Assembly (NCBI RefSeq): GCF_006345805.1
Contig: NC_043004.1
Location: 17,236,001-17,300,000 of the forward strand
Length of the DNA stretch: 64,000 bases
Source: Octopus sinensis
Lineage: Eukaryota
Direction of reading: 5' to 3'
The translations under genes and the position numbers were made by a program. The stretch's first letter is position 1, and each line of letters opens with the position of its first letter. The notes beneath the pieces were generated by a model. It saw only the letters and a program-made list of their open reading frames with translations, made no database searches and had not been told where the DNA came from. This document shows, in pieces, positions 750-27,899 of the stretch.

Positions 750-826
750 ATAATACAACTTTCCAACAAATGAATCATCATGACAACCTCCAATTACAAG
801 CGGGGAATGTGTATTAGCAACACTAC
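750..826 (-). CDS. LamG-like domain exon 3: (G)SVANTHSPLVIGGCHDDSFVGKLYY
   Basis: Acceptor tctttgttgtttacag|GT and donor TAT|gtaagt; 77 bp, phase 1 to 0. PLVIGG...FVG matches the C-terminal strands of LamG. Not in the ORF track. Confidence 0.85.
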
Positions 827-1203
827 CTGTAAACAACAAAGAAGATTGTAAAAACAACAACTAACGGTCTTTAAATTGAATATTTTATAATAGAAGTATT
901 TGGTAGGCATAAGACGGTGAGCTGGGAGAAATTTTAGCATGTCAGGCAAAATGCTTAGCGGCATTTTGTCCGTCTTGCTAATCTGAGTTCAAATTCCGCT
1001 GGGTTGATGAAATCGACTTACCTTTTCCCCAAAATGCTGGTCTTGTGCCAAAATTTGAAACCAATATATCAGAGCGACATGAATTAGATTGCAGAAACCT
1101 TTCTTCTCTTACAAAACTTGAGTATTCTTCACTCGTTATTTAACTTCATTCTCAAAATTCATATTGAAAAATATATCAAACTGCAGACCAAACTAAGTTT
1201 TGG

Positions 1204-1512
1204 AATGCTGCTGACCGTGGGATTGCACCTAGAAAGTTACCCTCCCAGGCACAAGTACGGGCAGGGTTGTTTATGGAAGACCAGCAGTCCCCCATGCATA
1301 CTGTCCTCCCCTCTCCGCGCCACCAGTGTTATCCAAGGGAAAGGCAACAGCAGATACAGTTTGACACCTATGACATCGCAACTCATTTCTACAGCTGAGT
1401 GAAGTGGAGTAACGTGAAATAAAGTCTTGCTCAAGAACAAAACACACAGCCCGGTCCGGGAATCGAACTCACAACCTCACGATCGTAAGCTCGACGCTCT
1501 AACCACTGAGCC
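1204..1512 (-). mobile_element. tRNA-derived SINE family B (other copies about 1-250, 54385-54697, 55010-55312, 56640-56965)
   Basis: The reverse complement begins GGCTCAGTGGTTAGAGC...GTTCGATTCCC (A/B boxes), followed by a conserved body that recurs in the window. Confidence 0.85.
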
Positions 1513-2472
1513 CACATATACTGGGATACAGTATATATAATCGAAGCAAGTAATGTCATCGGTATACAAATGCTTGTAAATCTAAGGGAACCATCCTGAG
1601 AAACGGGCATTTGAGGTAAATTTTATACAGCTTTATAGATCATAAAAATTTAAATGAGCAGACGTGAAAAATTTCACTGAAATTCTTTTGCATTTCTACA
1701 ATATATGCATGCCGGAGTCTTATTTCTCTGTTCACCGATGTGTGTGTGTGTGAGTAGATATGCACGTCGATATATATATCTATATTCGTCATGATAGATC
1801 GCTAGCCACTACACATTCTTTATTTTCTCTCCTTGTTTCTGTATTTCTTTCTGTGCAAGAGCGTATGCTCGAAACGTTAAAGACTTTTTCACTTCCCGAG
1901 CGTTATACTAATACATATGTTTGTTGTCTACACCACCTGTCTTCTTCTTTTGTTTTGTATTTTTGTTTGTGAATTCTCCCTCTCTCTCTCTCTCTCTCTC
2001 TATATATATATATTATATATATATATATATATATATATATATATATATATATATATATATATATATATATAAGAAAAGGGGTGCCATATTAAATTACTAG
2101 ACTCATTCCATTTCTGCTGCCATCGATAAAGCTGAGTCATGTTGAACCCTTATTCGTCAAAGTGACGACAAGGTGCGTGTAAGTCGCACTATTTTGTACT
2201 TGATTTTAACTGACAGAATTGGAGTACACGGGGCAAGGCTGATATCAAGCTTGAATATGAAATGAAAGAAATTATATATCAAGATTTAAATTAAGGATGC
2301 ACGAGTAGATATAATAATTAATATGATAACACAAAAAAAATGACATGGTTTGAATGAAAGGAGGAAGATACATACAGATATTCATAGAGACATAGAAACA
2401 GAAAACATAGTAGGAGAGAGTGGGGAGATAGACAGACAGACAAAAAAATGATAAAATTTGGGCTGCACATAC

Positions 2473-2563
2473 CTATAAGCTGGGTACTTTTCTTTTGGTT
2501 ATTTACTGTACCCGCAAAGGTATTTCCATCATACTGTAGAGTCAGGCGGACTTTCCTGCGAAG
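2473..2563 (-). CDS. LamG-like domain exon 2: LRRKVRLTLQYDGNTFAGTVNNQKKSTQLI(G)
   Basis: Lies within ORF 2318..2626. Donor ATAG|gtatgt, phase 1. Acceptor is either atgaag|CTT (2563, phase 0) or ttcgcag|G (2555, phase 2). Contains the YDG motif of LamG. Confidence 0.75.
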
Positions 2564-3942
2564 CTTCATACGAAAAACAGATGCAAATTCAAATAACAAT
2601 ATTTTAAAGATGAGATGAATATGCAAAGCATTTCTTTTTAGTATTAATTCATAAAATCGAAACAGTTAAGAAATATCTCTACCATAAATACATCAAATAT
2701 CTTATCTCTACATCAATACTACTTTAATCTCAGTCTTGTACTGGCCTTATCGATTATGAGTGAATGCAAGAGCAAATAGAGGCAGAAAAAAATCGAAATC
2801 TAGTTGTATGACCAAGCTAAACTCCGAAAGACACTAATCTGAGCTAACAAAGCAGTATCTACGTAATTACTCGACCTGCGAGAAACAGCAACCAGATCTC
2901 CCTCGAGTTACACAGTATTAATACTACAGCGAATTTTGTTTGTTCTTCGAACATTAAACTACTCTCCAACCGCCAAAATAATACTTGCAATAAATTAATC
3001 GGAACGAAATATGTGTGTATATATATGTATGTATGTATGTATGTATGTATGTATGTATGTATGTATGTTTATATATATATATATATATATTATATATATA
3101 TATATATATATATATATATATATCCATATATATGCATGTCCATCTGTCTGTCTGTATATATATATATATAATATATATATATATATATATATATATATAT
3201 ATATATACATATATATATATATACATATATACATATACATATATATATATACACACACACGTATATATACTTATATATATACACATATATATACATCTAT
3301 ATGTACATATATATATATACACACATATATACATACATATATATACGTATATATAATTATATATATATACATATATAAACACACTGTTACACATATATTG
3401 TGTGTGTGTGTGTATGCGCGCGCACATCTCTTCGTGTACTCGCATGCATATGTTTGCTAAACTCTTAATGTAAATATTTCGTGCAATTACACTTATATGT
3501 CTGTACTCTTCCCTTTGCAACCACTGAAATATGGTACTTTTTTAAGTTATAGTTTTGTTTTAAGTAACACTCGTACTTTATTCGGAGCTACTTTTACACG
3601 GCTTGGAGAGTGTAAGGTTGCAGCTGCGCATCGAACGGACAGCCATGTTAAAGCGGCTACGAATATTACTTGTTAGTATAACTACTGCGTTGACCTCTTA
3701 GAGAGTTTTGAACTAGCAGTTTTGTTTTAGTTGCACTTCTAACATTAATTGCAATACAAACACGTTTCACAGTATGTAATTAAAAACAAGAGATGCTTGC
3801 AGCGCTTTTACGATGTTTTGTGTAAATCCAATGGCTGGAAACAGGAATTTGATGGTATGCAAAAGGGGTGATACAAGCAATATAAAGCAATCCTTCTACG
3901 ATAACTTAAACTTAGAGATCTGATGATTTTGAAATATATAAA

Positions 3943-26072: not shown

Positions 26073-26279
26073 CTATTGGATCGATTGGATTTAGCGTTGG
26101 ATGTGGTGAATCACACTTTTCTTTACAGTGATAATCACGGCGACATCCTCTTCCTGGTTTAAAAGAATAACCCCACTGGCAGCATTTCTCTACTGCTTTT
26201 CCGTTGTAACATCTCAAGTATTGTCTACATTTGCCAGGCACGCGGAGTTCTGATCCCTCTGGCATGTTTCTGCAACGAT
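26073..26279 (-). CDS. Cys module exon M3: DRCRNMPEGSELRVPGKCRQYLRC...CKEKCDSPHPTLNPIDPI
   Basis: Same acceptor and donor contexts as M5; 207 bp, phase 1-1. Confidence 0.9.
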
Positions 26280-27147
26280 CTATACAGAGTAAAATAAATT
26301 GGGTATCAGTCATGCGTACAATATAGATTGGAAATTGTTACAGACCCATATGTATTCACTCACACGTACACACACAAATATATACAGAGAGAGGGGGAGA
26401 GTGAGGAAGAGACAGACAGACATTAAGAGTGCGAGAGAGAGAGATATATGACAACAAACTTTGGATGGAAGATCATAAATCCTTTAATGTATTGTAACGT
26501 ACGTATCTCACAAACCACATCTTTTAGTTGCTCTCTTGCTCATCCATTCTACATTACAACACAGGAATTTTTTCTGAGCGCACTCAAAAGTGTTTCACAT
26601 AAATGAACGTAAAAAATACACCCACCCACACATACTCACACACATATAGATGTGCATACATATATTATATATATATATATATATATATATATATATATAT
26701 ATTTATTTATCTTTTACTGAATTCAGTTCGAGGGCTGCGACTATGCTGGGAGCCCGCCGTTAGCCATGCTACACATTCGTTATTTAAAAACATTCTCTGA
26801 TGTTTTTAAAGTAATGAGACCTCTTCAATAGCCGTTGACTCTTCAATAGAAAGTCAACGAGTATTGAAGAGGCTGCAAGACGAAACAAAAATTTTAGGAA
26901 AAAAAAAATAAGTAAATGTGTGGGAACGAACCGATGGTTGTGTTAAAGAATAGTGCACTAAACGCGAATGACCCTCCCCAAAACACTAGAATACATGCAT
27001 ATATATATATATATTATATATATATATATATATATATATATATATATATATATATATATATATATATATATATATATTATATATATATATATATATATAT
27101 ATATATATATATATATAATATATAATATATACGTGGTTGTTGCTCAC

Positions 27148-27355
27148 CTCTGAGATCGTGTGGTGGGTCTGGCGTTGGATGTGGTGAATCACACTTTTCT
27201 GCAGTGATAATCACGGCGACATCCTCTTCCTGGTTTGAAAGAATAACCCCACTGGCAGCACTTCTCTACTGCTTTTCCGTTGTAACATCTCAAGTATTGT
27301 CTACATTTTCCAGGCACGCGGAGTTCTGATCCCTCTGGCATGTTTCTGCAACGAT
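27148..27355 (-). pseudogene. Cys module exon M2 with a 2-nt deletion (real pseudo-exon or assembly error)
   Basis: Near-identical to M3/M5, but reads cacttttct-gcag against cacttttctttacag. Length 208 bp (210-2). The strong donor AGAG|gtgagc is phase 1 in the corrected frame (...SPHPTPDPPHDLR). Confidence 0.75.
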
Positions 27356-27696
27356 CTATACAGAGTAAAATAAATTGGGTATCAGTCATACGTACAATAT
27401 AGATTGGAAATTCTTACAGAGACCCATATGTATTCACTCACACGTACACACACAAATATATACAGAGAGGGGGGAGAGTGAGGAAGAGACAGACAGACAT
27501 AAAGAGTGCGAGAGAGAGAGATATATGACAACAAACTTTGGATGGAAGATCGTAAATCCTTTAATGTATTGTAACGTACGTTTCTCACAAACCACATCTT
27601 TTAGTTGCTCTCTTGCTCATCCATTCTACATTACGACACAGGAATTTTTTCTGAGCGCACTCAAAAGTGTTACACATAAATGAACGTAGTTATTAC

Positions 27697-27899
27697 CTAT
27701 TGGATCGACTGGATTTGGCGTTGGATGTGGTGAATCGCACTTTTCTTTACAGTGATAATCACGGCGACATCCTCTTCCTGGTTTAAAAGAATAACCCCAC
27801 TGGCCATTTCTCTACTGCTTTTCCGTTGTAACATCTCAAGTATTGTCTACATTGCCAGGCACGCGGAGTTCTGATCCCGTGGCATGTTTCTGCAACGAT
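27697..27899 (-). pseudogene. Cys module exon M1 with three small deletions (-1, -1, -2); probably a low-quality copy next to the gap
   Basis: 203 bp against 207 bp for M3. The flanking intron 27900-28469 matches 26280-26790 but carries many 1-nt indels. Confidence 0.7.

Follow-up and report, generated by a model that had tools for sequence, protein, structure and literature searches.

An array of CBM14-type module exons joined to a LamG-like domain in a PIF-like gene of Octopus sinensis

How many modules does a protein related to the shell-matrix proteins Pif and BMSP carry in a shell-less octopus, and what could it do there? The question is raised by a 64,000-nt stretch of the Octopus sinensis genome (the window; 100% identical to GCA_006345805.1 chromosome CM016866.1, ~17,236,001–17,300,000 by coordinate arithmetic), in which a six-frame search and splicing place a PIF-like gene on the minus strand. 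The window is best explained as the 3' two-thirds of a single gene on the minus strand of CM016866.1. An initial annotation of the sequence called this gene hidden, but a RefSeq gene lies at exactly this locus (XP_036361074.1, 'protein PIF-like [Octopus sinensis]', 315 amino acids), and annotation already labels the O. vulgaris orthologue 'PIF-like' and that of O. bimaculoides 'protein PIF'. The answer that we favor, with some reserve, is that the locus encodes a multi-module CBM14 and LamG-like protein that acts as a multivalent chitin cross-linker in a chitinous structure other than a shell.

A regular-expression search of all six frames of the window with the pattern C-x14-C-x5-C-x8-CC-x11-C-x5-C-x3-C returns exactly six intact matches, all on the minus strand (26274–26113, 23948–23787, 19051–18890, 14877–14716, 10835–10674, and 8738–8577). 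Two further copies (27899–27697 and 27355–27148), with frames broken by 1–3 bp indels, are found by tblastn with three module sequences. The eight module exons of the initial annotation, six of them intact and of phase 1-1, are thus all recovered. Every intact exon is preceded by a polypyrimidine tract and AG, has phase 1 at both ends, and has a length divisible by 3 (207, 207 or 198, 195, 186, 180, and 198 nt). Eight collinear copies on the same strand, with their eight cysteines in register, are not a chance pattern. The module exons are as follows.

27697–27899, minus strand: module copy 1, m26/19 type, frame-broken (tblastn; alignment with intact paralogues and intact O. vulgaris copies).
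27148–27355, minus strand: module copy 2, m26/19 type, frame-broken, 208 nt (tblastn and alignment).
26073–26279, minus strand: module m26, intact, 207 nt, phase 1-1, AG/GT splice sites (regular expression and splice sites).
23747–23953, minus strand: module m23, intact, 207 nt, phase 1-1, GC donor (regular expression and splice sites).
18862–19056, minus strand: module m19, m26/19 type, intact, 195 nt, phase 1-1; absent from the O. sinensis RefSeq model.
14697–14882, minus strand: module m14, intact, 186 nt, phase 1-1; present in the RefSeq models.
10661–10840, minus strand: module m10, intact, 180 nt, phase 1-1; in none of the retrieved gene models.
8546–8743, minus strand: module m8, intact, 198 nt, phase 1-1; present only as a mis-spliced fragment in the O. 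vulgaris model.

The two broken copies differ from intact ones by 1–3 bp indels only and lie less than 1.3 kb from the end of the contig. Copy 1 carries three small deletions (4 nt in total, leaving 203 nt versus 207 nt in intact copies) less than 0.8 kb from the contig end at an N gap. In copy 2 the frame is lost toward the 3' end, where 2 nt are deleted and 3 nt inserted. The counterparts of both are intact in O. vulgaris, our comparison genome for the array (that of copy 2 at position 54738 of L001, a 95-kb locus on OX597821.1). The broken copies may be consensus errors or real pseudo-exons. All three species, O. sinensis, O. vulgaris, and O. bimaculoides, share the GC donor of m23 (CAAG/GCATGC, as against AAG/GTATGT in the paralogues), and the annotated proteins make use of it; an alternative in-frame GT donor is available at exon end 23756. 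Modules m26 and m19 are identical across 182 nt despite a separation of 7 kb, and m19 (19056–18862) is 99.45% identical to three non-orthologous O. vulgaris copies (L001:62802, 54189, and 55772) versus 98.4% to its positional orthologue. This pattern in the sequences hints at gene conversion among copies.

Spliced together, the six intact modules run in frame and free of stop codons into three LamG-like exons.

6270–6622, minus strand: LamG-like exon A, 353 nt, phase 1 to 0 (frame continuity; it holds the core of the domain matched in the library search).
2473–2563, minus strand: LamG-like exon B, 91 nt, phase 0 to 1 (frame continuity).
750–826, minus strand: LamG-like exon C, 77 nt, phase 1 to 0 (followed by a GTAAGT donor at 749–744).

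The initial annotation had proposed this in-frame junction, and it holds; the strand had to be added, as did a fourth coding exon at the end of the gene, which lies outside the window (~3.15 kb past its start) and supplies the last 15 codons (LYIYKCLPSDRRHPQ, then a stop). A search of the window with the terminal exon and the 5' exons of the O. vulgaris model found neither. Reading exon C through its GTAAGT donor (749–718) adds ten codons, VSIEAQILNK, and a stop beside an AATAAA motif, a possible alternative 3' end. The spliced product is Cys-rich and strongly basic, with an isoelectric point (pI) of 9.4 (10.3 for the LamG part), and its modules are joined by short, Pro/His-rich linkers.

What fold do the modules adopt? 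In the spliced product, Pfam CBM_14 is matched in six stretches, at 61 bits. When the octopus modules are aligned with the CC-containing (CC) modules of 17 mollusc relatives, the eight cysteines are invariant and the aromatic positions Y/F-W (after Cys2) and G-x-S/A-F/Y are largely retained. Searched against the PDB, a profile of the module matches best Aplysia EHEP, a protein with three CBM14 domains (E = 1.4e-8); it also matches chitinase CBM14, squid 'chitin binding beak protein 3' (E = 6e-3), Avr4, and the CBM14 domain of human chitotriosidase (CHIT1). An AlphaFold model of the module has a predicted local distance difference test (pLDDT) score of 89, and its seven best Foldseek matches are all of CBM14 or tachycitin type (CHIT1 CBM14, Der p 23, EHEP, and tachycitin). 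The six-Cys framework of CBM14 is present as C-x14-C-x5-C-x8-C(C)-x11-C-x5-C, to which the octopus module adds a Cys pair. By Pfam, PDB profile search, and predicted fold, the module is a CBM14-fold domain with one extra Cys pair.

Other searches with these sequences gave little. Direct phmmer comparison of the spliced protein with the PDB produced no match, and a word-indexed protein search with the full spliced product returned three clusters only. The same type of search with m10 plus m8 gave no candidate, a result that is unreliable since P0001 contains 23 m8 residues. A protein search with the module profile returned two unnamed fragments and did not recover the octopus proteins themselves.

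The C-terminal domain points to the molluscan shell-matrix families. A phmmer search against 1.84 billion representatives finds 61 relatives of this domain, including 'protein PIF-like [Argonauta hians]' (GAB1600178.1, E = 4e-21), a Mytilus coruscus 'sushi-like protein', and a 'shell matrix protein [O. bimaculoides]'. The relatives that were scanned show VWA, CBM_14, and/or Laminin_G_3 matches, those to Laminin_G_3 being mostly sub-threshold, and 24 of the 35 aligned domains match Laminin_G_3. The Pif/BMSP kinship put forward in the initial annotation is thereby borne out, with mollusc proteins of VWA, CBM_14, and Laminin_G_3 composition as relatives. A profile of the domain matches the LamG-like domain of pappalysin-1 in the PDB (E = 1e-3), with neurexin at E = 0.18. 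The AlphaFold model is all-beta (pLDDT 94.9, predicted template modeling score 0.90) and has 436 Foldseek matches in the PDB at E ≤ 0.001. The matches listed are the jelly-roll, lectin-like subdomains of clostridial neurotoxin binding domains (template modeling score 0.64–0.77), a similarity of fold only. Transitive homology and predicted structure together support the assignment of the domain to the ConA/LamG-like sandwiches, homologous to the LG domain of mollusc Pif/BMSP proteins.

Does the array itself set the octopus gene apart from its relatives? The CC module was located by regular expression among the retrieved relatives, where 17 non-octopus proteins have it, each in one copy; only this octopus gene has more than one. 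The statement in the initial annotation that the module is single elsewhere therefore stands. In the relatives whose sequence was read, the order of domains is VWA, a classic six-Cys CBM_14, one CC module, a third Cys module, and LG. With A. hians PIF-like as the query, tblastn gives no match to the VWA, the classic CBM_14, or the third module in either the window or the O. vulgaris locus of 95 kb; a VWA exon farther upstream may still exist.

Within the molluscan Pif/BMSP shell-matrix group, the gene is best explained as belonging to the 'LamG3/Pif-like' branch of cephalopods. The described 'Laminin G3/Pif-like' clade combines three ChtBD2 domains with one Laminin_G3 and lacks VWA; its members are known from the Argonauta eggcase matrix, the Nautilus shell, and the genome of O. 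bimaculoides, which has no shell (10.1101/2021.07.10.451900; PMC9635652). The Argonauta protein is a secreted one that occurs in eggcase matrix, and the epithelium of arm and mantle expresses it at very high levels (10.1101/2021.07.10.451900). Like these proteins (from A. hians eggcase, Nautilus shell, and O. bimaculoides, Ocbimv22010162m), the octopus gene has ChtBD2/CBM14-type modules N-terminal to a single C-terminal Laminin_G_3/ConA-like domain, and no VWA. It differs in number: the described proteins have three ChtBD2 domains (those of Argonauta may or may not all be of the CC type), whereas we find at least eight CC exons here and 16 in O. vulgaris.

Pif of Pinctada fucata (Pif97/Pif80), BMSP, and A. 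hians GAB1600178.1 share with the octopus gene a homologous LG domain (E down to 4e-21) and the 8-Cys CC module. The octopus gene differs in its multiple CC modules and its basic product, and VWA, the classic CBM_14, and the third module were not detected in it. Where Pif/BMSP membership is defined by VWA (PMC11291548), the gene has the CBM_14 and LG part of the architecture but no VWA in the loci searched. Nor is it Pif proper, which is cleaved into two proteins (Pif97/Pif80). Pif80 provides an acidic, mineral-binding region (PMC11291548); the octopus product has no acidic low-complexity region and is basic throughout. The CC modules of Sinanodonta, a bivalve, and Argonauta are acidic (pI 4.3 and 5.2, respectively). 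In O. bimaculoides the PIF-like gene has, ~155 kb away and on its own strand, a paralogue annotated 'shell matrix protein' with a signal peptide, a third-type Cys module, and LamG, which suggests a small cluster of LamG-family genes in this species.

Given this kinship, the octopus protein could serve calcium-carbonate mineralization as Pif does, for example in stylets or statoliths. Homology to Pif/BMSP-family proteins speaks for such a role, as do the presence of Argonauta LamG3 in a calcified eggcase and of Nautilus LamG3 in the shell (10.1101/2021.07.10.451900; PMC9635652). However, a basic product without an Asp-rich, Pif80-like region argues against carbonate binding and for a role in an organic matrix: the pI values of the product and its LamG part contrast with those of the acidic CC modules of Sinanodonta and Argonauta, and the VWA is lacking in both octopus loci searched. 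We consider a mineralizing function quite unlikely.

How large is the array, and how old? Between position 158 and about 28356, the window follows the O. vulgaris chromosome collinearly, at ~93–99% identity, mostly 97–98%. Collinearity ends, and the array is broken off, at the following feature.

28470–28569, strand not applicable: assembly gap of 100 N.

The 5' end of the gene and further module exons are missing from the O. sinensis assembly at this gap, and eight copies are therefore a lower bound. Collinearity is probably lost here because the assembly joins scaffolds, collapses a repeat, or carries a rearrangement. The O. vulgaris locus holds 16 modules, all with an open frame, eight cysteines, an AG acceptor, and a phase-1 donor, plus two partial module fragments (L001:39791 and L001:41240). 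For O. bimaculoides we used two regions of CM046608.1, L004 and L003 (about 26.94–26.97 Mb and 27.12–27.14 Mb, respectively). Its locus is full of N runs; four modules were found (m23-, m19/26-, m14-, and m10-like), and a 3.3-kb gap occupies the expected position of m8.

In a neighbor-joining tree of module exons, O. bimaculoides contributes an orthologous partner to each of m23, m19/26, m14, and m10, which indicates that those types are old; m8 appears to be old as well, judged from its divergence. By these comparisons, approximately five module types predate the split from O. bimaculoides. The m19/26 type is present once in O. bimaculoides, in four copies in the window (again a lower bound), and in 11 copies in O. 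vulgaris. Close to the gap, exon and intron recur together as a tandem unit every 0.54–1.08 kb. These counts indicate that the m19/26 type has multiplied recently in the O. vulgaris/sinensis lineage.

A high copy number next to a gap could be an artifact, with the assembly mis-expanding or mis-collapsing a shorter repeat. Identity to O. vulgaris does drop to about 93–95% close to the gap, the copies on that side carry small indels, and the O. bimaculoides locus is riddled with gaps. Yet two independent assemblies, each from a different species, run collinearly for 28 kb with the types in the same order (m23, m19, m14, m10, m8), the copies differ by substitutions, introns, and spacings, and the better assembly, that of O. 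vulgaris, has more copies, so that any artifact here would be one of under-counting. An inflated array is thus very improbable.

Are the module exons maintained? Introns of O. sinensis and O. vulgaris differ by 1.25% substitutions and 5.3 indel events per kb. Across nine intact exons (1694 nt) there are 10 substitutions (0.6–0.7%) and no indels, where 8.9 would be expected from the intron rate (P = 1.3e-4). Modules m10 and m8 are 100% identical in nucleotide sequence between the two species; m10 is also 95% identical to O. bimaculoides at the protein level. In comparison with O. bimaculoides, m10 has a ratio of nonsynonymous to synonymous substitution rates (dN/dS) of 0.18 and m19 one of 0.13. 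Recent paralogues within O. vulgaris show the same pattern, with exons that differ by 3.6% without gaps and upstream introns that differ by 10% with 28 gaps. The counts are small, but all point the same way: on this comparative evidence the module exons, including those in no gene model, appear to be under selection.

The product of the gene is most likely a secreted, strongly basic protein of the beads-on-a-string type, in which 8-Cys modules of CBM14 fold, each encoded by one phase 1-1 exon, would be followed by a single ConA/LamG-like beta-sandwich. We infer that the module array likely binds chitin fibrils multivalently and cross-links them, and that the basic LamG-like domain would tie the chitin to a second matrix component. 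The protein would act outside the cells, in a chitinous structure that an epithelium produces and that is not a shell; the initial annotation had proposed a scaffold, for example for beak, radula, or sucker cuticle. The array would have grown by tandem duplication of exon-plus-intron units, and the valency of the protein would be set by the number of phase 1-1 exons included. Because all module exons are of phase 1-1, any subset of them could be joined in frame, and the number of modules may vary between isoforms.

Arthropods offer a parallel in peritrophins and similar multi-CBM14 proteins, whose tandem CBM14-type domains would hold chitin fibrils together through multivalent binding. Those domains have six cysteines and are not accompanied by a LamG-like domain, and the arrays belong to another phylum and arose independently. 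Among molluscs, Dosidicus gigas chitin binding beak protein 3 (7BWE) and Aplysia kurodai EHEP (8IN3) have CBM14-type domains that match the module profile, EHEP also in structure. They differ from the octopus product in having one and three domains, respectively, no LamG, and no demonstrated CC/8-Cys pattern.

Several observations weigh against the reading of the locus as a secreted, multi-module chitin cross-linker. A single module scores below the CBM_14 cut-off (19.5 versus 22.1 bits). Pfam finds no Laminin_G match in the octopus C-terminal domain taken alone, so that the LamG assignment is transitive and structural; of the two profile matches that the initial annotation proposed to look for, only CBM_14 was obtained with the octopus sequence itself. 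EHEP, the best relative of solved structure by sequence, binds polyphenols, not chitin. Against O. bimaculoides, dN/dS is only 0.58–0.67 for m14, m23, and LamG exon A. Two module copies are frame-broken in the O. sinensis assembly. No signal peptide is discernible in the window, where the 5' end of the gene is missing beyond the N gap; XP_036361074.1 has none, and the RefSeq and other models begin at non-signal sequence. The sole candidate is an unverified O. vulgaris exon at L001:19505–19571, with the reading MSLNIIFLITLCCLIKETLSAV, one further base, and then a phase-1 GTAAGT donor. A divergent module at L001:30234, left out of the O. vulgaris model, follows 10.7 kb downstream, and neither the window nor L002 or L003 contains a counterpart of the candidate exon. 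Finally, XP_036361074.1 has about two modules and skips m19, m10, and m8, and the 316-residue O. bimaculoides RefSeq protein XP_014774956.1 ('protein PIF') has the same layout and likewise two.

The short models could mean that the normal protein has two or three modules and that the other exons are rarely used cassettes or decaying recent duplicates. Besides the two RefSeq proteins, this explanation can draw on the 2015 models of O. bimaculoides, which have three or two modules and differ by one skipped exon, on the two broken copies in the window, and on the two partial fragments in O. vulgaris. However, 16 O. vulgaris copies and six window copies retain the open frame, the eight cysteines, the AG acceptor, and the phase-1 donor. 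The unmodeled m10 shows the low dN/dS and the cross-species identity given above, and exon indels are absent where 8.9 are expected. Models based on short reads are, moreover, unreliable over near-identical tandem exons. XP_036361074.1 starts at an internal Met within m26 (window position 26265), its first coding exon resembles a hybrid of m26 and the end of m23, and m14 and the four C-terminal exons follow. The O. vulgaris model CAI9726915.1 ('PIF-like', 668 amino acids) has approximately eight modules in series and is mis-spliced from the middle of m8 to LamG exon B. All gene models retrieved for the locus, from three octopus genomes, are incomplete or mis-spliced. A protein with few modules is thus possible but doubtful.

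A CBM14 fold could also serve a ligand other than structural chitin, such as polyphenols or quinone-tanning precursors, as in EHEP, or microbial walls, as for a tachycitin-like, basic antimicrobial lectin of epithelial mucus. The sequence match to EHEP, whose three CBM14 domains bind phlorotannin, the appearance of tachycitin among the structural matches, and the basic, Cys-rich product with its His/Pro-rich linkers are compatible with this idea. Opposed to it are the largely retained aromatic positions of the module, the matches to chitinase CBM14 and to the squid chitin-binding beak protein, and the setting of the family in chitin-rich matrices, shell and eggcase (10.1101/2021.07.10.451900); an octopus is also a carnivore without an obvious need for tannin binding. 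We regard a ligand of this kind as unlikely and retain structural chitin as the favored target.

The remainder of the window holds little else. A search for other genes in 28570–64000 found only transposon remnants, and beyond the N gap the window matches the O. vulgaris PIF-like locus at dispersed repeats only. A repeat of ~200–400 bp, probably a SINE-like (short interspersed nuclear element-like) sequence, explains most of the non-collinear matches between the window and that locus. Nucleotide skew reaches −0.58 at 32–34 kb, and one of the skewed microsatellite tracts lies directly upstream of the m23 exon. The features are as follows.

61464–62555, plus strand: mariner/Mos1-type transposase remnant in three frames (Pfam HTH_48, E = 4e-10; Transposase_1, E = 6e-25).
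34937–35347, minus strand: reverse transcriptase fragment (Pfam RVT_1, E = 3e-8).
42454–42963, plus strand: open reading frame with a CHLCLEPGHIKKNCP zinc-knuckle-like motif; no Pfam match.
8005–8321, 13356–13667, 22515–22877, 36315–36746, 38137–38442, and 59076–59696, among others, both strands: the dispersed repeat of ~200–400 bp, also present at many sites of L001.
32001–34000 and 23100–25400, strand not applicable: long pyrimidine-/purine-skewed microsatellite tracts of TCTA/TCTG-type tetranucleotide repeats.

Which part of this picture is new? The family, its domain types, and the retention of a gene with ChtBD2 and LamG3 in a shell-less octopus were known (10.1101/2021.07.10.451900; PMC9635652), so that much of the novelty claimed in the initial annotation falls away. 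New are the size of the homotypic array and its recent expansion, both under-represented by the gene models; neither an array of 8–16 copies of one module type nor the recent burst is described in the literature searched. For the O. vulgaris species complex a bolder version can be entertained, tentatively and with clearly less confidence than the cross-linker itself. There, a very recent burst of one CBM14-type exon, from one copy in O. bimaculoides to 11 in O. vulgaris with the exons kept under selection, would have produced either a giant protein with ~16 chitin-binding sites or a set of tissue-tuned phase 1-1 cassettes. The sucker lining, or some other chitinous structure, would then be the place of an innovation at species level that the retrieved gene models miss.

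These results overturn nothing; they are a modest, checkable addition. Proteomic or transcriptomic work on octopus beak, sucker cuticle, stylet, or egg envelope could overlook this protein or misjudge its size if it is built on the current models. For the family, the locus provides a concrete, datable case in which the valency of a protein evolves by tandem exon duplication, within a shell-matrix family that shell-less octopuses have kept.

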